DNA from: Saccharolobus solfataricus P2 | GTDB taxonomy: Archaea; Thermoproteota; Thermoprotei_A; Sulfolobales; Sulfolobaceae | Reading direction: 5' to 3' (one strand) | DNA length: 64,000 nt | NCBI RefSeq assembly: GCF_000007005.1 | Contig: NC_002754.1 | Shown: positions 11,692-58,123 of the stretch, piece by piece | Layout of the letters: each line of letters starts with the position of its first letter | Numbering within the stretch: the stretch's first letter is position 1 | Notes under the pieces: generated by a model | Seen by the model: the letters and a program-made list of their open reading frames with translations, nothing else | Told to the model about the DNA's origin: nothing | Database searches by the model: none | Made by a program: the position numbers and the translations under genes

Positions 11692-11723
11692 CAACTTTAA
11701 GTTAAATAACTAGATAAAATATG

Positions 11724-11775
11724 TTGTGATGAAAGGGAAAGATCAGATCTGTGAAGAAGTGGAGCGACACTGAGG
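11724..11775 (+). ncRNA. Candidate box C/D guide sRNA upstream of and overlapping acyP
   Basis: C GTGATGA 11726-32, 11-nt guide, D' CAGA 11744-47, C' GTGAAGA 11751-57, 12-nt guide, D CTGA 11770-73; canonical archaeal spacing. Confidence 0.75.
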
Positions 11776-45676: not shown

Positions 45677-45767
<91 letters not shown>

Positions 45768-45936: not shown

Positions 45937-46009
45937 AGCCGGGTAGTCTAGTGGTCAAGGATCCAGGGCTCTGGCCCCTGGGACCAGGGTTCGAATCCCT
46001 GCCCGGCTA
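45937..46009 (+). tRNA. tRNA-Gln(CUG), intronless, A1-U72
   Basis: AGCCGGG/CCCGGCT+A, anticodon loop CTCTGGC in stem CAGGG/CCCTG, TTCGAAT; TATA-like TTTTAAGT 45908-15. Confidence 0.96.
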
Positions 46010-46122
46010 CCTAGCTAGTAAATATATCGATTGTTGCTCAGAACAACTATAATTCAATTATTTTATAGTATCTTTTAGATTTTAATTTCTGAAAGCTAGA
46101 TATTATCTTTTTGAAACATGAT

Positions 46123-46137
46123 ATGGTAATACTCCTC
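46123..46137. promoter_or_regulatory. 15-bp element upstream of nrdJ, identical to 32711-32725 at cdvA; contains an AGTATTA box (minus strand)
   Basis: ATGGTAATACTCCTC at both positions. Confidence 0.55.
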
Positions 46138-46180
46138 TCTTTACAACATAAAGTTAAATTGATACAAGTCATAATAATTC

Positions 46181-48706
46181 TTGAAGGAAATGGAGCAGCT
46201 ATTATACTCTACATCTTTAAGAAAGATTAAAGTAATCAAACGAGACGGTAAGGTTGATGAGTTCAAATTAGAAAAGATACTATCTAAACTTTCTTCCGTC
46301 CCAGATGAGGTAACAGATGGCATAGTCAATGATGTACAAGCTAATGTAAAAGATAATGCTATAGATACTAGGGTAATTGCGGATATAGTTGAAAGAAACC
46401 TCATAGAGAACTCACTAAAGTATCCTTTCTTAATGGAATTAGCAAAACGATATGTCTTAGCTAGAATTTACAATCATGTTTTCGGTAAAGGGAAATGGAA
46501 AGATTTCGATGAGAAGGATTTGCTTCTCTCTTACAACGCATTAAAAGTATTGGAAGCTAGATACTTATTGAAAGATCCTAATACTTTGCGTTATATTGAG
46601 ACACCACAGATGTTATTCAGAAGAGTAGCTAGATTTCTCGCATCAGTTGAGAGAAAATATGGTAAATCTGAGGCTGAAGTTAAACAGCTAGAAGATAAGT
46701 TTTACGAAATGATAAGTGACTTGAAGTTTGTACCCAATTCGCCAACACTGATGAATAGTGAAACTAGACTAGGCATCTTATCAGCATGTTTTGTAATTCC
46801 AGTTAAAGACGCTATGACTACGCCAGAGGGAGATGGAATATATGACGCGTTAAGAGCTACTGCCCTTGTTCACCAACAAGGTGGAGGGACTGGTTTCGAT
46901 TTCTCAGAATTAAGACCTAAGGGAGACGTAGTAGCTTCAACTGCGGGTGTGGCGTCTGGTCCGGTTTCATTTATGAAAGTATTTGATGCCTCTACTGATG
47001 TTATAAAGCAAGGTGGAAAGAGAAGAGGAGCTAACATGGGAGTGATGCACGCATGGCACGCTGATATTGAAGATTTCATTCGTGCTAAGACTGGTCAGCT
47101 AAAAGATGTTCAGTTACAGAATTTCAATATTTCTGTAGGTGCTTATGACTACTTTATGGATGCTGTTGTGAAAGGCGAGAGTGTACCTTTAATTAACCCT
47201 AGAAAGACCAAGATAGCAGGGAGAGATCATGAATATTATATTACAAAGGCTAGGGGTTATATGAGTGAGGAGTGGATTCAAGAGGTCATACTATCAGAGT
47301 TAGAGGAAAAAGGTGGAGTAGTTTCTCTAGATGAGAGTAAGATTATTACGGTTGACGAAGCACTAGTAATAGCCTCAAAGGAGGGGGCTGTTGTCAAGTA
47401 TGTTAATGCAAAATCATTATTCGATGAAATAGTGAAGGGGGCATGGGATAGTGGTGACCCTGGCCTTCTCTTTATCGATACTATTAATAGGAGACATCCT
47501 GTTTGGTATTTAGGTAAGATTAATGCTACAAATCCATGTGGTGAAGAGCCACTATTACCTTGGGAGAGTTGTAATTTAGGCTCTATAAATCTAGAGAAAT
47601 TTGTTATAGAAAGAGATGGCAAAGCGGCGATAGATTGGGATGGATTAGCCGAAATTATTAGGTACGGGGTAAGGTTTCTGGATAACGTGATTGATGCTAA
47701 TCGTTATCCGTTAAAGCAAATTGAAGATGCAACCAAGAGAACTAGGAAAGTAGGTTTAGGTGTTATGGGACTAGCTAGAATGTTTATTAAATTAGGTATT
47801 GCTTATGATAGTGTAGACGCAATATACTTGTCATACCAATTAGCCAAGTTCATATTTTACCATGCGTATAAGGCATCTATTGAGATAGCTAAGGAGAAGG
47901 GTACATTTCCTACATATGATGCGAGGCTGTATAGGGATATTTGGGAGAGTGCATTGGACTTCGATTCATTGCTACAAACTGCTGAAATTAGTGATAAACC
48001 CTCAGATTACGTTAAAAAGTTAACTAGTGTGGTGGATAAGTTAGATTTTGATTTGCTAAAAGGTGAGAGATTAAAATATGGTTTAAGGAATTCCACTGTA
48101 GTTTCTATAGCCCCAACGGGTACTATCTCAATAATAGCTGGGACATCATCTTCAATAGAACCACTATTTGCATTAGCGTTTGTTAGAAATGTCGCAGTTG
48201 GGAAGTTCATCGAAATTGATCCGCTTTTCCTAGAATATCTAAGAAAATATGAGTTAGATGACCCAGAGGTTATTCAGAAAATAGCTGAAAGCGGGATAAT
48301 TGGGGATAACGTATTTATGCCAAGATCATTAAGGAAATTGTTTAGAACTGCTCATGAGGTTCCACCAATTTATCACGTCATGCATCAAGCAGCTTGGCAA
48401 CAGTGGAATGATTCCGGGACTTCCAAGACTATTAACTTAAGATCAGAGGAGCCACCGGAGACTGTAGAGAAGGTCTATTTATTAGCGTGGAAACTTGGAA
48501 TAAAAGGTATAACTGTCTATAGGGATAAGAGTAAGCAACAGCAAGTGATCTATTTCGGCGTTAAGAAAGAAAGGGAGGAATATGAGAAGAAAAAGGAAGA
48601 GGTGGAAAAGAAAACGCAATTACTTCCTTCTAGTTTAAGGATGGAGAAGAAATTTGTTGAAGTTTCAGAGACATATGCAGGTGGATGTAAGACGTGTGAA
48701 CTATAA
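46181..48706 (+). CDS. nrdJ: Class II (B12-dependent) ribonucleotide reductase with an N-terminal ATP cone
   Basis: VIKRDG ATP cone, [33 protein letters not shown]-terminal CKTC; no intein at TNPCGE. Confidence 0.96.
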
Positions 48707-48760
48707 AAACATTTTTATTTATCTGTTTTTTATATTATATTGGACTGAAGTGTATTAACC

Positions 48761-49129
48761 ATGTCATTACAATTACCATGTGAATTTTCAGTAAGGGAGA
48801 TTTTACCAGCAGTTAGAAGTATAGTAGCTCAAAAATTAATAAAAGAGAGGAATTTATCTGAATATAAAGCAGCTAATTTAATGGGCTTAACACCGGCTGC
48901 TGTTTCAAATTATCTTAAGTCTAGAAGAGGTAGTAATTTAAGATCTCTTCTAGAGAAAGATGAAAAATTTATGGATCTTGTAAATGAGGTTACGGAAAGG
49001 ATTCTAAACTCAAATTCTAATCTTTCTGTGTATTATTGTATTTTGTGTTCTGAGGGTAAAAAAGTTCTTACAAAGCATGGGTATGCCCTAAGCCCATGTT
49101 TATATGAGACTATAGTTGAACCTAAATAG
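48761..49129 (+). CDS. HTH transcriptional regulator (ThiR N-terminal-like/COG2522 type)
   Basis: PCE...ILPAVRSIVA, HTH AANLMGLTPAAVSNYL. Confidence 0.8.
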   Translation: MSLQLPCEFSVREILPAVRSIVAQKLIKERNLSEYKAANLMGLTPAAVSNYLKSRRGSNLRSLLEKDEKFMDLVNEVTERILNSNSNLSVYYCILCSEGKKVLTKHGYALSPCLYETIVEPK

Positions 49130-50162
49130 CCTTTCTTTTAAGTAATAGATCTGGTAATTTTTTTATTTCTAATTCCAAATTAATAATCCCCCATCTTCTA
49201 ATTGGAATTTTAACTCTATCATATTCCGTTGTCAATGTATTATTCGGTTTTAATATTTTAGTTATTCTTGCCGAGATATATACTGTGGCTATAACCGGTT
49301 TATCGCTGAAATTTTCTAACACAATTTGCAGTATGTTGGTTTTCTCGTCAAACTTCATGTATAATGGAATTATAGAGGAAGGCTCTATTCGATATAATGA
49401 GAGAGGGAATTGCGGATTACACTCTATCTCTATTACATCGTTAGTCATATCCCATAATAATCTATGGAGTTTAGATTCAGTAAAAGTCCTCGTCTTCGAA
49501 ACTAAAATTTTTCCATTAGCTTCTACACTAATCTTTCCTAGCTCGAATTCTAAGTCCATAAGAGAATTGCTTACAAAGGAATACGCCTCTGTGAGTTCTA
49601 AACTTGCAGCAAATGTGTTACGTATTGGATTGTAACTGCTTTCTATGTAATAAGGATTCATATAGAAGAATTTGGGATTTACGAATCTTGTATTTATGCT
49701 TATTTGGTTTTCCGTTAGTTTTATATTTTCTAAACTAACATTTCTGCCATTCCCAATCTCACCCTCTTTTAATTCTATAATTCTATTTTGCATAAAGTAA
49801 TATCTTGGCCAAGGAGATATGTTAAAAAGGGAAATTCCTTCTTTACAAGGTATTAAATATTCTACCAGCTTTTTTAATGAGTCAGTGTCCAATCGGGTAA
49901 AGATCCAAGGAATTGAAACCTTGTGTAAGGGTGTTCTAATTATCAACTCCTCTTCATTTTCTGTCCCTTCAGTTAATATTGTAGATAGATCTGGACCAAG
50001 AATTTTTGCCTTATATTTCCATTTTACTCTCTTAACTCCGCCAATAGTTAATAATTGTGGTAGTTGTTCTATACTAAGCATGTCATCTTGTAGCTCTATA
50101 TTTTCACTAAGAGTTTTAAATGGATACTCAGCGGCTACCTTTATTATATCATCTAGCTTCAT
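49122..50162 (-). CDS. Hypothetical 346-aa protein downstream of gatE
   Basis: Long ORF with typical codon usage; no motif recognised with confidence. Confidence 0.85.
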   Translation of the reverse strand: MKLDDIIKVAAEYPFKTLSENIELQDDMLSIEQLPQLLTIGGVKRVKWKYKAKILGPDLSTILTEGTENEEELIIRTPLHKVSIPWIFTRLDTDSLKKLVEYLIPCKEGISLFNISPWPRYYFMQNRIIELKEGEIGNGRNVSLENIKLTENQISINTRFVNPKFFYMNPYYIESSYNPIRNTFAASLELTEAYSFVSNSLMDLEFELGKISVEANGKILVSKTRTFTESKLHRLLWDMTNDVIEIECNPQFPLSLYRIEPSSIIPLYMKFDEKTNILQIVLENFSDKPVIATVYISARITKILKPNNTLTTEYDRVKIPIRRWGIINLELEIKKLPDLLLKRKAI

Positions 50163-50238
50163 AAGTGGTCAAGCTCATCATTTAAATCCGACAAATGCCT
50201 TGTCTTCATCATTAATCTGCCCGAGGGTAATTCTTCAC
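50159..50238 (-). ncRNA. Box C/D sRNA locus with three C-guide-D modules; the last guide fits tRNA-Gln G18 (sR11-like)
   Basis: GTGAAGA-ATTACCCTCGGG-CAGA-tta-ATGATGA-AGACAAGGCATTTGT-CGGA-tttaa-ATGATGA-GCTTGACCACTT-ATGA; CTTGACCACT is the exact complement of AGTGGTCAAG at 45950-59. Confidence 0.85.
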
Positions 50239-52136
50239 TCTATAACATTTTTGAGTCTTGACCTTATTAATTCTAATACAATTTTCCCATCGGCTCTTCC
50301 TTTAACTTTACTCATTACTTTTGACATTATTAGGTTAACTGCTTTATCTTTTCTTTTCCTTATCTCATCTAGGTTAGAATTAATTATATCATCTATTATC
50401 TTTTCTAACTCTTCAATTGGTAATACCTCGTATTTACGTATTATATCCTTTAATTCCACGTTTTTACTAGTAGTATATTCTACCAGTATTTCTGAAATAG
50501 AATCCTTACTTATTCTGCTCTCATAAATGCTTTTTATTAACTCTTCTATGTCCTCCTCATTAATCTTTGATATATCACCGCCTTTTGATTTAACATACTT
50601 TAGTGTGTTTGTGATCGTACTGGCTATTACAACCGGAGGAACCCTTGGTGAATATTTGTTAACTAACTCTTCAAATAAGTCAAGTCTGGGATCTCTAATT
50701 ATCTCCTTGGCAAGTTCTTCGCTTAAACCTAGCACGATATATCTTTTCATTTTAGACTCTGGCGATTCTGGAACCAGTTTTTTAGCATCCTCAAGTAGTT
50801 TTTCATCTATTCTTCTCGGCGGAATATCGGTTTCTGGATACATTCTAGCTGATCCTGGCTGTGGTCTTAGGAATTTCGTAGTTCCATCATCTAGTGCTCC
50901 TCTAGTTTCCTTAGGAATGCCATCAAATGCCAGTAATATTCTGTCCTTTATTACTTCTACAGCTTTATCTAGCCTCTCTCTTTCGCCAACAATTAGAATT
51001 AGAGCATCTTCAGTTGTCGCATTAAGGGCTTCTCTAACTTTGTTTATCTCCTCTTCGGTTATTCCATAATTAGGTAATTCATCAGAGTGAAATAGTCCAC
51101 CTAATCCTGCAAGTGCTCTAACGTAGTCCGCAATTTCTGTTCCAAATCTTCTCTTTTTTGGTATTAATTCCCAACCCAATACTCCCTTCAACTTATATGC
51201 TCTTATTCCATATACTAATCCTCCCTTTTCTATTCCATTTTTGATGATTTTACTATTAGTATTTTTAAAAAGTTCTGTGACATCTTTTACAACAAAATTG
51301 GACAAAACTAGCTCTTTGGTCAATCCTCTTCTATAAAGTTCTTCCTTTATCTTCAGTAAGTTAAACTGTCTTATTGCTTCATATCTAACTATATCAGGTA
51401 TTAATTCTAGTTTTTGCACCCCCTTAATTTCTATCTTTGTACCGCCTTTTATAGAGATATTTAGATCTTGTCTTATTGTACCTATACCTCTCTTTACCTT
51501 ACCAGTCATTCTAAGTAACTGACCAATCTTTAAGGCAACTCTTTCAGCTTGTTCTGGGCTCCTTATATCTGGTCCAGTTGAAATTTCTATTAACGGTATC
51601 CCTAATCTATCGAGTGAATAAGTTACTTGATCAGTCCCTTCATCTATCTTCCTAGCAGCGTCCTCCTCAACTGCAATACTTTGTATTGAAACTTCCTCAT
51701 CCTTTAGCATTCCACCAAGTGCTATTATTGCGGTTCTTTGGAATCCAGTGGTGTTTGAACCATCTATTACAATTTTTCTCATAACATAGATTTCATCTAC
51801 TATGTTACTGTTTAGTGCCATTGCAATGGCTAAGGCTATTTTTAATGCTTCTTCATTTATTGCATGTGGAGGTTCTTCATCAGCTTCTACAAGACAACTT
51901 GTGGTAATAGGTATTCTATATACGTATTTTTTACCTTTTTTCCACTCAAACAATGCTGCGACATCGACTTCTCCTAATTCACTTAACGCAGGTCTTAAAT
52001 ATCTCTCTAAGGTTAGCTTATATTCTTCTTCCAAATTAGTACTGCAGTTGCAGAATAATTTATGAGGAGTGTTAAGCTGTTGATGAATCTCTAATCCTAC
52101 TTTTAACCCCAATTCTTCATAATTCAACTCACTCAT
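50235..52136 (-). CDS. gatE: Glu-tRNA(Gln) amidotransferase subunit E
   Basis: [42 protein letters not shown]. Confidence 0.97.
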
Positions 52137-53463
52137 ATGACCACCTTGGGAAGAGATCTAAAGTGTGACGAGGATTTATTTCTCCCACGAGATTTGTTAT
52201 CATTAAATTTTGTATTTTTTCTAAATCTTGCTCATGTGCAAGTACCCACATGAGTTTTACTAATGCTACCTCTGGTAGCATATCTTCCAATGGGGTGACA
52301 CCAGCATCGAGTAACTGTCTTCCAGTAGTATATACATTCATATTAACTCTTCCAAATAGACACTGTGTTGTCATTCCTATAAATATACCATCTTTAGTAG
52401 CCTTTCTGAATAATTCTATGTGATCTGAAGAAGTATGTCCTAATCCAGTACCAGCTATGATTATACCTCTTATTTTAGTATTAGTTAACATTTGTTCTAA
52501 GAAGTCTCTATCTAATCCTGGATAATAGTATAACAAAAATACTCTATTATCGAATTTAGCGTCAAGCAACGTTTCGTCTTTTTTGCTTATATACTTCTCG
52601 TTAAGCATTACTAGTTTCCTTTCCTTCCAAAGAACTTTAGCTAAAGGTTTATCGTTCACTGACTGAAAAGCATCTCTTCTACTGCTGTGCATTTTTCTAA
52701 CCTTTACTCCTCTATGTACTAATGCGTAAGTATCTGAGGATTCGGCATGCATATTTACTACTACTTCTCCAAACGGTGCATATTTAGCCGTGATAACTGC
52801 AGATAAGAGGTTTATTGCTGAATCGCTACTAGGTCTATCACTACTTCTCTGTGACCCCACTAGTACTACAGGTCCTTGTAACGATCTTAGAGAGAAGGCT
52901 AAGGCTGAGGCTGTATATGCCATAGTGTCCGTACCATGGGCAATAACTATACCAGTGTTTCCTTCATCAAAGGCCTTCTTTACTGATTCAGCTATCTTAA
53001 CCCAGAATTCGGGTTTCATGTTTTCACTTAATATAGAGAAAAGTACCTCAGCATCCACTTTTGCTATTTCGTTTATTTCTGGTAAAAATTGTATTATTTC
53101 TTCAGTGGTTAATGCAGGCCTGACTGCACCAGTTTCATATTCAACCCTACTTACTATTGTGCCCCCTGTGCTAATTATCTTTATTTCGCTCTTAGCACCA
53201 TTATGAACTTCTCTTCTTTCACTCTCCCGATCTTTACTTGATTTTTTTTCGATTGGTTTTATCTCAGTTATATTATCTATAGATATTCCTATATTATAAC
53301 CATTATCTAATTTTATTACGAATATTCTATCATCTTTAGAGTAACTTGGTAACAATATACCTCTTATTCTTAAGTCTCCTTTCTTAATTTCTATAAGATC
53401 TCCTTCCTCTATATTTAGATTTTTCAAAATATCATAGGCCTTTCCTTTATAATTTTCTTGCAC
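52129..53463 (-). CDS. gatD: Glu-tRNA(Gln) amidotransferase subunit D
   Basis: [33 protein letters not shown]. Confidence 0.97.
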
Positions 53464-53496: not shown

Positions 53497-53655
53497 TTAT
53501 CTAGCAGGAGCTTGTTGTCTGGCTTTTACTACTCTCTTTTCATATTCCTTTCTATTTCTTACTCTTGGTACCTCTTTATGTTTTTCTTTAGGCTGTATTT
53601 TTGGTGTCTGACTTCTAACTTTTCCCGCTTTGGTTAACGAACCGTGTGAAGGCAT
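53497..53655 (-). CDS. rps30e: 30S ribosomal protein S30e (52 aa); absent from the ORF track
   Basis: Manual translation [52 protein letters not shown]. Confidence 0.96.
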
Positions 53656-53720: not shown

Positions 53721-54959
53721 ATGATGAAAATATACCTAATTGAGCATGTTATTGGAGCAGTTGCTTACGATGAAAATGGAAATATTGTAGACTATATTAC
53801 AAATCCAAGAGATTTGGGAAAAATAACTGAGGAACTATTAAATAATGAAAAGGGTATCCCATTCAGCGCAACAGTTGAGTTATTAAAGAAAGTTAATCCA
53901 CAAGAGGTAGTAGTTGAGAACGAAGCTGAAGTTCCTAAATTACAAGCATTAGGTTATAGGGTTTCATATGAGCCATATAGCAAGGTTTCGAGAATATTTA
54001 GGGAATCATTACCTAAAGTGGCAATAGATATAAAATTTGCAAGCAATGAAGAGGATTATTATAATTTCCTTCATGAACTTTCACTAGAATATACCAGAAG
54101 AAAGCTGAGGTCTGCGGCACAAAAGAGAGACCTTTTAGCTATTCAAGCGGTTAGAGCAATGGATGATATAGATAAGACCATAAATCTTTTCTCAGAAAGA
54201 TTAAGAGAATGGTATAGTATTCACTTCCCAGAATTAGATAAGCTTATTGAGGATCACGAGGAATATGCAACTATAGTATCTAGGTTTGGTGATAGGGGGT
54301 TTTTAACTATTGATAGTTTAAAGGAATTGGGTTTCAACGAGCAAAGGATAAATAGGATCCTTGATGCAGCAAAGAAAAGTATAGGTGCAGATATTTCAGA
54401 AGACGACTTATCTGCAATGAGGATGATTGCGAACACTATTTTAGACTTGTATAATATTAGGAGAAATCTTAATAATTATCTAGAAGGTGTAATGAAAGAA
54501 GTTGCTCCAAATGTAACAGCCTTAGTGGGTCCAGCATTAGGTGCTAGATTATTGAGTATAGCAGGGAGTTTAGATGAATTAGCTAAAATGCCAGCTAGTA
54601 CTATCCAAGTATTGGGAGCGGAAAAGGCCTTATTTAGGGCGTTAAGAAGTGGCGGAAGGCCACCCAAACATGGTATAATATTCCAGTACCCTGCTATTCA
54701 TACATCACCTAGATGGCAAAGGGGTAAGATTGCCAGAGCTTTAGCAGCTAAATTAGCAATAGCTGCCAGAGTAGATGCTTTTAGTGGTAGATTTATAGGC
54801 GATCAACTAAATGAACAGTTAAAGAAGAGGATAGATGAAATTAAAGAGAAATTTGCGCAACCACCACCTAAAAAGCCGCAACAACAAAAGCCACAGCAAC
54901 CACAAAAACAGCAAGCAAAAGGTAAAAAAGGTGGAAAGAGAAGAGGTAAAAGAAAGTGA
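53721..54959 (+). CDS. nop5: C/D RNP core protein Nop5 (Nop56/58)
   Basis: [44 protein letters not shown]. Confidence 0.97.
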
Positions 54960-54965
54960 TAAAAA

Positions 54966-55664
54966 ATGTCTGAAGTAATTACCGTAAAACAAACCAATAT
55001 GGAAAATATTTATGAATGTGAGTTTAACGATGGTAGTTTTCGATTATGTACAAGAAACCTAGTACCGAATTTTAACGTTTACGGCGAAAGGCTGATCAAG
55101 TATGAGGGTGTTGAATACAGGGAGTGGAACGCATTTAGAAGTAAATTAGCGGGCGCAATACTTAAAGGTCTTAAGACTAATCCGATTAGAAAAGGTACTA
55201 AGGTCTTATATTTAGGTGCTGCTTCTGGAACTACAATAAGCCATGTATCTGATATTATAGAGCTAAACGGCAAGGCTTATGGAGTGGAATTTTCTCCTAG
55301 AGTTGTAAGAGAATTATTACTAGTAGCTCAAAGGAGGCCTAATATCTTTCCACTATTGGCTGATGCAAGATTTCCTCAGAGTTATAAGTCAGTAGTGGAG
55401 AACGTTGACGTACTTTATGTTGATATTGCCCAACCGGATCAGACGGATATTGCAATATACAATGCCAAATTCTTCCTCAAAGTAAATGGAGATATGCTTC
55501 TAGTAATTAAAGCGAGGAGTATTGACGTCACCAAAGACCCTAAGGAAATATATAAGACCGAAGTAGAGAAATTAGAGAATTCTAACTTCGAGACGATTCA
55601 AATTATTAATCTAGACCCATATGATAAAGATCATGCAATAGTTCTTAGCAAATATAAAGGGTAG
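54966..55664 (+). CDS. flpA: Fibrillarin-like 2'-O-methyltransferase
   Basis: [36 protein letters not shown]. Confidence 0.97.
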
Positions 55665-56088: not shown

Positions 56089-57021
56089 ATGAGCAAAAAA
56101 ATCATCGATGAAGTTATAGACATATTAGAGGATAAAAAATATACTTATACGATGATTGAATATCCAGAACATAATAGAAAATCTGTTGACATCGTTCTTA
56201 ACTCCAAGGAACCCACTCTAATTAGAGTTTCTGAAGATAAGATCACCAAAGAGGAAATTTCTGACTTGAAGAAAATAGCGGTATCAACGTTAACTGCGTC
56301 ATTAGTTGTTACTAATGAAGAAGAAGAGGATATCGTTTCAGTTAAGGCTGATAACGTTTTTGCAATTTCACCAGAAGGATTCAAGAAAGTGATTAACGGC
56401 GAGAAAATTTTCCTTTATAGAACTAGGGGAGGTATATTCATAAAGATTAGGAATTACATATTAAAACATAAGAGAGAGGAAATGGGATATAGTATAGGAG
56501 ATGTGGCAAAATTTCTTGGTGTTTCTAGAAAGGCTATTTACGATTACGAGAAGGGGGATTCCGACGTATCGCTTGAAGTTGCCGAGAAGTTAATAGATTT
56601 GTTTGGAGATGATATAATAGGCGATGTAATATGGGATTCTATAAAAAGCAAAAAAGAAATCCTTGAAGAGGGCGTAGCAGAGTTTTCTCCAGAGAATTTC
56701 AAAGCAAAGTTGATATATAAATTGAAAGAAAGTGGGTTAAACGCCTTATCATTAAAATTAACTGCAGCAGATTTGATAGTTAAGGATAGCGATAATAACA
56801 GATATTTAGTTACAATAGAGAACAAGGATTATAATAAGTCAATGAAGAAATTTTATGAAGCTAAAAAACTGGCGTCATACACGAAATCTGAATTAGTAAT
56901 AATCATAAGGACTTCAAAGATGTTAAAAGAATGTGAAGATCTAGGATATAAAACTTATGAAGAAAATGATATACATTCTTTAATAGATGAAATTAAAGGA
57001 AGTAACGGAAGGCAAGGTTAG
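56089..57021 (+). CDS. Archaeal HTH transcriptional regulator (COG1395 type)
   Basis: [10 protein letters not shown] followed by Cro/C1 [23 protein letters not shown]. Confidence 0.85.
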
Positions 57022-58123
57022 AATATTCGTACCAGATCCTACAGGATATATGGTAGAAGGAAAATTTGATCCATCATGGGCTCCAGTATTCTATAATCCT
57101 AAAATGACTTTCAATAGAGATCTCAGCGTAATTGTGGTTAGCATATTAAAACCTAAGATAATAGTAGACGCGTTAAGCGCAACGGGCATAAGAGGAATTA
57201 GATACTACGTTGAATCGTGGAAAAGCGAACAACTAATTCTAAATGATAAAAATCCAAATGCCACTTCTTTAATTCAAATAAATGCGAAAAATAATGGGAT
57301 TGAAAATGCTAAAATTTATAATAAAGACGCGAACGCTTTACTCTACGAAGTAAAAAGTGACTACATCGATATAGATCCTTTTGGTTCTCCTGCACCTTTT
57401 ATTCTTTCATCCTTAAACGCCGCAACAAGAAATGGAATCGTAGCATTTACAGCAACTGACCTATCTCCGCTTGAGGGATCCTCACCAACATCATGTAGAC
57501 GAAAATATGACGCAATTAATCACAAACTTTCCTCATCCAAGGAACTTGGATTAAGAGTACTTATTGGCAAGATAATTAGAGAAGCCGCGATATTAGAAAA
57601 GACAGTATATCCGCTATTCTCTTTTTATGCAGATTATTATTATAGACTATTTGTAAGAGTGGAGAATGGTGCTAGAAAGGCAGACGATAATATTAATAAG
57701 CATCTTAAATATTTTGGAGAATGCCCCCGCTGTGGATTTCAGACATTCGTAGAGGAGAATTGTAAGACTAAGTGCCCCGTATGTGGCGAGATTTTTAGTA
57801 TTATTGGTCCTTTGTATATTGGTCCTCTTTATAGTATGGAGTTTTTAAAAAGAATAATGGATTTATATAGTAATTTTAACTACTTGACCTCTTTTAATAG
57901 AATACAAAAGTTACTTAATGTAATAGAAAAGGAGGCAAGATTTAAAAATGTATTCTATAATATCAGTAAGCTCGCATCCAAATTAAAAATTTCAGCTATT
58001 CCTCCTATTGAATCTATTTTAGAATGTCTAGGTGATGCTTCCAGAACTCATTTTGCTCCTACTGGGATAAGGACCGATAAGGAATATGAAGAAATAACAA
58101 AGTGTATTAAGAGCTTAAGATAA
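56987..58123 (+). CDS. trm1: tRNA G26 N2,N2-dimethyltransferase
   Basis: [36 protein letters not shown]. Confidence 0.96.

Follow-up and report, generated by a model that had tools for sequence, protein, structure and literature searches.

The amidotransferase GatDE, which acts on Glu-tRNA(Gln), reads two elements of its tRNA, the first base pair and the D-loop (PMC2811023, PMC2943598). The modifications of this tRNA have been mapped by mass spectrometry in Sulfolobus acidocaldarius, where tRNA-Gln(UUG) carries 2'-O-methylated G18 (Gm18; fragment UCUAG+C[Gm]G) and an "undetermined monomethylated U72 (indicated as Um)", an orphan modification awaiting a guide or an enzyme (PMC7668247); Gm23, Cm26 (fragment GmAUCmCAG), and Um34 are given in the supplement of the same study. 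For Sulfolobus tRNA-Gln, Gm18 directed by a C/D box small RNA (sRNA) is cited there from Ziesche 2004 and snoRNAdb. Two S. acidocaldarius C/D box sRNAs, Sac-sR125 and Sac-sR126, the second listed 57 nt beyond the first, have been seen by RNA-seq (PMC4644070 suppl.). Sac-sR126 was represented by 3193 reads and has no rRNA target listed; Sac-sR125, like IHOsR109 of Ignicoccus, which is also known from RNA-seq, has predicted targets in the H69-H71 region of 23S rRNA. Here we describe the locus in which these observations meet, positions 45937-53463 of a 64,000-nt stretch of the Saccharolobus solfataricus P2 genome (NC_002754.1; the whole stretch is called the window below), where members of both sRNA families lie behind the genes gatD and gatE.

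The picture that we consider likely, in both its structural and its mechanistic parts, is the following. Across the Thermoprotei, a conserved block consists of the fibrillarin and nop5 genes divergent from a string of S30e, gatD, and gatE, and the gatDE transcript would continue into two C/D guides, both cut from the read-through transcript and joined by L7Ae, Nop5, and fibrillarin. Of the two, the first (sR125 family) would methylate 23S rRNA. The second (sR11/Sac-sR126) would pair through its D' guide with A14-G22 of tRNA-Gln, giving Gm18, and through its D guide with a stretch made up of 3' acceptor strand, discriminator, and the nucleotides that follow (C68-C75 plus the trailer), giving 2'-O-methylated U72, and this small ribonucleoprotein (sRNP) would act on pre-tRNA-Gln while its 3' end is still untrimmed and CCA has yet to be added. 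The sRNA family itself is already known; new are the interpretation of its D guide as one for U72, its conserved place behind gatE, and the set of Desulfurococcales relatives beyond the Rfam model. A literature search found no publication that assigns the U72 methylation or that links gatE with an sRNA.

The two guides of sR11 and their sites on tRNA-Gln

The tRNA genes were called with ARAGORN and Rfam, and the protein genes with NCBIfam equivalog models and their cut-offs. The sRNA on which the argument turns lies at 50127-50185 on the minus strand and matches the Rfam family sR11 (RF01150; gathering score, 39 bits) with 50.3 bits over the full model. Read from the sequence along that strand, it has a C box AUGAUGA (50175-50181), a D' guide GCUUGACCACUU (50163-50174), a D' box AUGA (50159-50162), a C' box UAGAUGA (50149-50155), a D spacer (50132-50148) whose box-proximal part AAAGGUAGCCG is the guide, and a D box CUGA (50128-50131). 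With RUGAUGA close to its 5' end and CUGA close to its 3' end, it has the motifs of archaeal C/D box sRNAs, and the D' spacer has the canonical 12 nt. Sac-sR126 is the S. acidocaldarius copy of sR11, agreeing with it in box order and in the D' guide that addresses tRNA-Gln's D-loop, and the copy in the window is an orthologue that shows no difference in kind. The copies of S. acidocaldarius, Sulfurisphaera tokodaii, and a Saccharolobus metagenome-assembled genome (MAG) score 41-54 bits with the Rfam model and occupy the same place after gatE.

The substrate is also encoded nearby, as a first-pass annotation of this DNA had proposed: a tRNA-Gln(CUG) gene stands at 45937-46011 on the plus strand (ARAGORN; Rfam tRNA, 59.9 bits), and its ends, 5'-AGCCGGG...CCCGGCU-A, form the A1-U72 pair. 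Its D-loop reads AGUGGUCAA and lacks residue 17; CCA is not encoded, and the 3' trailer is CCUAGC. The D' guide GCUUGACCACUU forms 10 contiguous base pairs with A14-G22 of this tRNA, and the pairing table places G18 at N+5. The D guide ..AAAGGUAGCCG, which ends at CUGA, forms nine contiguous base pairs with CGGCUACCU, which comprises C68-U72, A73, and three nucleotides from the start of the trailer; here N+5 is U72. At both sites N+5 pairs in Watson-Crick fashion, and the duplex lengths lie within the accepted range of about 9-12 bp. When random 12-mers were set against the 85-nt tRNA-Gln precursor with N+5 required to be paired, the D' result (at least 10 bp) was matched by 6e-5 of them, about six in 100,000, and the D result (at least 9 bp) by 4e-4. 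The two sites are 54 nt apart on the tRNA, and neither complementary string has a second site in the window. A search of the window for further tRNA-Gln guides by 9-mer complementarity gave only chance matches without boxes, and no guide for position 23 or 26 was found in it. The guide for G18 of tRNA-Gln that had been proposed near gatE is therefore real, and the direction of Gm18 by the D' guide is established. The assignment of U72 to the D guide is new; we infer it from complementarity, and it plausibly accounts for the monomethylated U72 of S. acidocaldarius tRNA-Gln(UUG).

Both guides are kept by the relatives. Our comparison covered 35 Thermoprotei loci taken from the gatE side, a set built by a contig scan for GatE, which gave few Sulfolobales, and enlarged through a search for homologous proteins and the contigs that encode them (for Sulfuracidifex P0053, no encoding contig was found). 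Among these loci, 19 members of the sR11 family were recognized. The Sulfolobales members are the window, the Saccharolobus MAG (L083), L204, L001, L004, S. acidocaldarius (L081), Sulfurisphaera tokodaii (L082), and HS-7 (L029); the Desulfurococcales members are L006-L012, L016, L023, L024, and L038. The Desulfurococcales relatives fall below the Rfam threshold, and Rfam run in E-value mode on their loci did not recover sR11. They were placed by guide identity, by synteny, and by our own sequence-only model R1, built from the eight Sulfolobales copies, which recovers L011 (E = 2e-6), L012, L038, and L023. In all 19 members, the D' guide has the form (C/U)UUG(A/G)(C/U)C(G/A)C, and the D guide, which the D box follows, has the form NGGUAGCC(N). 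Covariation with the target is seen in the D' guide: U16 of the tRNA faces A of the guide in the window, and C16 faces G in L083, HS-7, and S. acidocaldarius. The core of the D guide, GGUAGCC, is complementary to G69-C75 of tRNA-Gln and is invariant in 18 of the 19 members, HS-7 having AGUAGCC. In the Desulfurococcales the base before the core is usually U, giving CGGCUACCA, which corresponds to the CCA end.

The D duplexes of the relatives have 8 and 11 bp. The longer one is that of HS-7, whose D guide AGGCAGUAGCCA forms 11 bp with G69-A73 and the 6-nt trailer CUGCCU of the tRNA-Gln(UUG) at its own locus. Once the core has set the register, a match at six trailer bases has a chance probability of about 2e-4, and a CCA end would give only 6 bp. 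Because the D guide pairs with genomic trailer nucleotides, in HS-7 as in the window, these sequences suggest that the substrate of the sR11 sRNP is pre-tRNA-Gln, before its 3' end is trimmed and CCA is added.

In the Sulfolobales the sRNA overlaps a protein gene, orf346 (346 aa; 49122-50162, minus strand), an open reading frame (ORF) with homologues, which starts with the AUG of the sR11 D' box and whose codons 8-12 (K-V-A-A-E) are the D guide and the D box. This arrangement leads to another explanation, in which the D guide is an orphan, its conservation coming from the overlapping N-terminus of orf346 (K-V-A-A/S-E/D) or from box-proximal structure, and only Gm18 is made. Besides the overlap, it can draw on the invariant complementarity of only 7 bp and on the observation that in Pyrobaculum most guides that overlap a gene at its 5' end are orphans (PMC6009581). 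However, GGUAGCC and CUGA are also kept in nine Desulfurococcales loci, where the D-guide copies lie outside any long ORF and no orf346 homologue exists, and in the Sulfolobales the synonymous positions of the Val-Ala codons over the D guide (the third positions of GUA and GCC) never vary; these two observations argue against orf346 as the reason why the D guide is conserved. Moreover, where the guide of HS-7 departs from the others, it does so in just the way that fits the tRNA-Gln trailer of HS-7, and a methylated U72 is present in S. acidocaldarius tRNA-Gln (PMC7668247). An orphan D guide thus seems to us unlikely.

It may also be asked whether the sRNA mainly does something other than methylation, either as a chaperone that keeps the D-arm and the 3' acceptor strand apart while pre-tRNA-Gln folds or is processed at its 3' end, or as an L7Ae-bound k-turn that controls the translation of orf346. 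Two guide sites so far apart on one tRNA, one of them including trailer nucleotides, would suit a chaperone, a function that has been proposed for double guides (PMC4644070), and the position of the orf346 start codon in the D' box would suit the second alternative. Yet in S. acidocaldarius both N+5 positions are nucleotides found methylated by mass spectrometry, and the family persists where orf346 is absent, so that we give this explanation even less credence than the orphan guide.

Against the U72 assignment itself, several points must be counted. Against a canonical length of 12 nt, the D spacer measures 17 nt in most of the Sulfolobales; in HS-7 and the Desulfurococcales it measures 12-15 nt. 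The D duplex is short, 8-11 bp with its flanks, and an acceptor stem rich in G-C must be opened for it to form. In S. acidocaldarius tRNA-Gln, the mapping gives U72 as monomethylated but does not localize the methyl group to the ribose. Finally, the gene and the trailer of S. acidocaldarius tRNA-Gln(UUG) lie outside the comparison, and guide and target were seen together in three genomes only.

Two further observations concern the sequences of these guide sites. The D guide AAGGUAGCCG (50132-50141 of the window, minus strand) is identical, not complementary, to a stretch ..ACAAGGUAGCCGU.. near the 3' end of 16S rRNA, which is universally conserved in the alignment of the PMC4644070 supplement; it follows that the 3' end of tRNA-Gln with its trailer is complementary to the same stretch. 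This identity is probably due to chance, because the sequence is AUGGUAGCCG in the guides of the Desulfurococcales. Neither the 16S nor the 23S sequence of S. acidocaldarius in the PMC4644070 alignments contains the core string GGCUACC. Among the metagenome matches listed for the tRNA 3' end GGTTCRAATCCNNNNNNGGCTA, no tRNA-Gln of the Sulfolobales or Desulfurococcales was gained; the matches listed were mostly bacterial tRNA-Glu and the tRNA-Gln of mesophilic archaea, and among them AGCC...GGCUA is widespread in archaeal tRNA-Gln and the trailers vary.

The 3' flank of gatE

The genes gatE (50235-52136, minus strand; NCBIfam NF003107, 900 bits against a cut-off of 456) and gatD (52129-53463, minus strand; NF003217, 609 bits against 310) are both present, as had been stated earlier. 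They are full length, co-oriented, and adjacent, with an overlap of 8 nt. The string begins with an ORF for ribosomal protein eS30 (52 aa; 53497-53655, minus strand), identified by the match of Pfam Ribosomal_S30 to the syntenic gene in L081-L083 and L204-L206.

The first-pass annotation had placed the tRNA-Gln guide directly behind gatE. In fact, the 50 nt from the gatE stop codon to sR11 hold a second C/D box sRNA (about 50187-50240, minus strand), whose C box contains the stop codon of gatE. This sRNA, for which an Rfam scan matched no family, was recognized by its conserved position and the identity of its guides. Its layout is GUGAAGA / AUUACCCUCGGG / CAGA / AUGAUGA / ..AAGGCAUUUGU / CGGA, in other words, C box, D' guide with its D' box, C' box, and D guide with its D box. 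Both guides (..UUACCC(C/U)CG.. and AAGGCAUUUGU) are identical to those of Sac-sR125 and IHOsR109, and Sac-sR125 has the same position after gatE in S. acidocaldarius. The second letter of the D box varies among the relatives (CUGA, CCGA, CAGA, CGGA), and the window has CGGA instead of CUGA. In contrast to sR11, Sac-sR125 and IHOsR109 are predicted to target 23S rRNA and not tRNA-Gln, and the copy in the window is a predicted double guide for the H69-H71 region.

How far the two sRNAs keep to gatE can be read from the comparison. The sR125-like sRNA follows gatE in 28 of the 35 loci, among them all the Sulfolobales loci examined and many of the Desulfurococcales, and ends 26-174 nt past the stop codon. 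For sR11 the figure is 17 of 35, in the Sulfolobales and Desulfurococcales, with ends 87-540 nt past the stop codon; in these 17 loci the order gatE-sR125-sR11 is kept, with 1-20 nt between the sRNAs. In two more loci, L011 and L012, sR11 is found 4-9 kb from gatE, and none was found within 10 kb in Acidianus (L003, L206), Metallosphaera (L005), L002, and Pyrolobus (L205), where sR125 is present. The proposed synteny of the guide with gatE holds, in other words, across two orders, but not in Acidianus, Metallosphaera, or Pyrolobus. Because these lineages keep gatDE without sR11 at the site, the linkage is dispensable.

The gatDE genes and the sRNAs lie on the same strand, there is no room for an intergenic promoter, and the order is conserved in the relatives. 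From this arrangement it is most likely that the gatDE transcript runs on into both sRNAs, although a promoter inside the coding sequence of gatE may serve them instead. Since the D' box of sR11 doubles as the start codon of orf346, the excision of the sRNA and the translation of orf346 from one transcript would be mutually exclusive. The spacer between sR125 and sR11 (50181-50190 of the window, minus strand) is A/T-rich and TATA-like, GGAUUUAAA, with AUUAUUUA, GAUUUAG, and AUAUAUA in relatives. It lies about 20 nt upstream of the orf346 AUG and could be the promoter of a leaderless orf346 mRNA without the 5' half of sR11.

Among the loci compared, orf346 always follows gatE and occurs in the Sulfolobales only. 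It matched no Pfam or NCBIfam family, and its AlphaFold2 model (predicted local distance difference test, pLDDT, 90) is a beta-sandwich that resembles only the non-catalytic C-terminal domains of GH38 alpha-mannosidases. On these grounds, orf346 was rejected as a partner in the tRNA-Gln system.

What the position of sR11 means is a separate question. It had been suggested earlier that methylation of the D-loop is co-regulated with transamidation, and this idea can now be extended: a guide in the gatDE operon would 2'-O-methylate exactly the two recognition elements of GatDE, G18 and U72 of the A1-U72 pair, on the precursor, coupling the production of the enzyme with the marking of its substrate, and the methyl groups would tune recognition by GatDE or the non-discriminating glutamyl-tRNA synthetase, or the heat stability of the acceptor end. 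We regard this extended proposal as speculative and improbable, and hold the same doubt about whether the linkage of gatE and sR11 reflects functional coupling with GatDE at all. Co-location alone does not show co-regulation with transamidation; position is weak evidence for coupling because an rRNA guide sits in the same flank and is commoner there, and because some lineages have lost sR11 from it. Guides that have nothing to do with glutamine thus occur in the 3' flank of gatE too.

The explanation toward which we lean, if only slightly, is that the link is one of position: the 3' flank of gatE would be a landing site open to C/D sRNA genes in general, carried along on an expressed mRNA beside nop5 and fibrillarin, and the tRNA-Gln target would be a coincidence, with no consequence for transamidation. 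The distribution just described, from the commoner sR125 to the lineages in which sR11 is missing from the site or has moved, is in line with such a landing site, and sRNA genes that overlap the ends of protein genes and are co-transcribed with them are common in archaea (PMC6009581). On the other side stands the fact that, among dozens of sRNAs per genome, the one linked to gatE across two orders targets both of the tRNA elements that GatDE reads. This match is suggestive, but it was noticed after the fact and may still be a coincidence. As both predicted methylation sites lie in elements read by GatDE, the coupling idea nevertheless deserves a direct experiment.

Neighbouring genes in the window

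On the other side of S30e, and divergent from it, lie the genes of two core proteins of the C/D sRNP, nop5 (53721-54959, plus strand) and fibrillarin (54966-55664, plus strand), followed by trm1 for tRNA (guanine26-N2)-dimethyltransferase (56987-58123, plus strand; NCBIfam NF003331, 732 bits). Their presence next door, which the first-pass annotation had noted, is confirmed by scores above the NCBIfam equivalog cut-offs, for nop5 and fibrillarin together with synteny. The nop5-fibrillarin pair stands divergently beside S30e-gatD in the Sulfolobales and in many loci of the Desulfurococcales and other Thermoprotei, including most of the loci that carry a gatE-linked guide, and it does not stand beside gatD in the Bathyarchaeia, Nitrososphaeria, or Euryarchaeota loci compared; in the relatives, trm1 is usually found a few genes beyond it. 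An action of Trm1 on tRNA-Gln is not supported here: position 26 of tRNA-Gln(CUG) is C, and Trm1 therefore has no G26 to modify in this tRNA. Past trm1 (beyond 58123 in the window; about 2000-5200 in L081-L083, L204, and L206), the block stays conserved, with an Rpc34-like gene, TFB, and a gene for a Gar1-like H/ACA protein. The wider region is rich in genes for RNA processing and transcription. Another C/D box sRNA of the window, at 11722-11775 on the plus strand, matches Rfam sR2 (RF01139) with 59.6 bits.

The tRNA-Gln gene is separated from gatE by a class II ribonucleotide reductase gene, an ORF of 122 aa, and orf346. Its inclusion in a gatDE neighbourhood is not supported by the 13 Sulfolobales loci, of which only the window, L083, and L029 have the gene at a distance of 10 kb or less from gatE. 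Its place between the reductase and the suf genes is confined to a Saccharolobus-like lineage, represented by the window and L083; in L029 (HS-7), the tRNA-Gln(UUG) gene is on the nop5 side and adjoins the gene for S-adenosylmethionine synthetase, and the other Sulfolobales have at the corresponding position a tRNA-Arg gene, often beside that for arginyl-tRNA synthetase, or nothing. Neither trm1 nor the tRNA-Gln gene close by belongs functionally to the gatE-sRNA unit, and the surrounding genes are ordinary housekeeping genes.

Two side observations concern other tRNA genes at this end of the region. An intron-containing tRNA gene at 45677-45766 on the minus strand (Rfam, 62.7 bits) was missed by ARAGORN; by eye, its anticodon is UGU (tRNA-Thr), and its intron of about 16-17 nt follows position 37. 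The same tRNA-Thr gene adjoins tRNA-Gln in L083 (16758-16846). In several Sulfolobales, tRNA-Arg stands directly beside the arginyl-tRNA synthetase gene, just past the ribonucleotide reductase (L082, 16102-18066; L204, 16901-18854; L206, 17427-19372). This site is the position of tRNA-Gln and tRNA-Thr in the window, and it offers another case of a tRNA gene adjoining that of an enzyme acting on the tRNA.

Meaning of the locus and comparison with known systems

If the D guide does direct Um72, an orphan modification of S. acidocaldarius tRNA-Gln (PMC7668247) is explained, and the locus provides a rare case of RNA-guided methylation in an acceptor stem and evidence for a C/D sRNP acting on a tRNA precursor that still has its 3' trailer. 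The modification would then fall within an identity element for GatDE, namely the first base pair, and, together with the conserved position of the guide, it would offer a testable link to the indirect archaeal route to Gln-tRNA(Gln). If the D guide does not serve Um72, the locus is an ordinary case in which the 3' end of a housekeeping operon carries sRNA genes.

Among known systems, the intron of euryarchaeal pre-tRNA-Trp carries a C/D guide for Cm34 and Um39. It is likewise a double C/D guide for two sites of one tRNA precursor, acting before processing is complete. The tRNA-Trp guide, however, sits in its own substrate, works in cis or in trans, and addresses the anticodon arm, whereas sR11 is a separate RNA behind a protein operon and addresses the D-loop and the acceptor end.

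Among crenarchaeal C/D sRNAs, tRNAs are common targets; in Pyrobaculum, about one third of the families target them, and the recurrent substrate tRNA-Gln is targeted by sR27, at U34 and thus at another position than by sR11 (PMC6009581). That study mentions no target in the acceptor stem or trailer and no linkage to gatDE (the words "acceptor" and "Gln" occur 0 times in its text). The bacterial protein-only enzyme TrmH/SpoU yields the same product, Gm18, which stabilizes the contact between the D-loop and the T-loop (PMC6313347). It stands alone and serves many tRNAs, whereas in the sR11 system the guide RNA restricts the modification to tRNA-Gln. Beyond these known systems, the present locus adds a guide embedded behind gatDE across two orders, the relatives of that guide in the Desulfurococcales, and a candidate assignment of methyl-U72 to its D guide.

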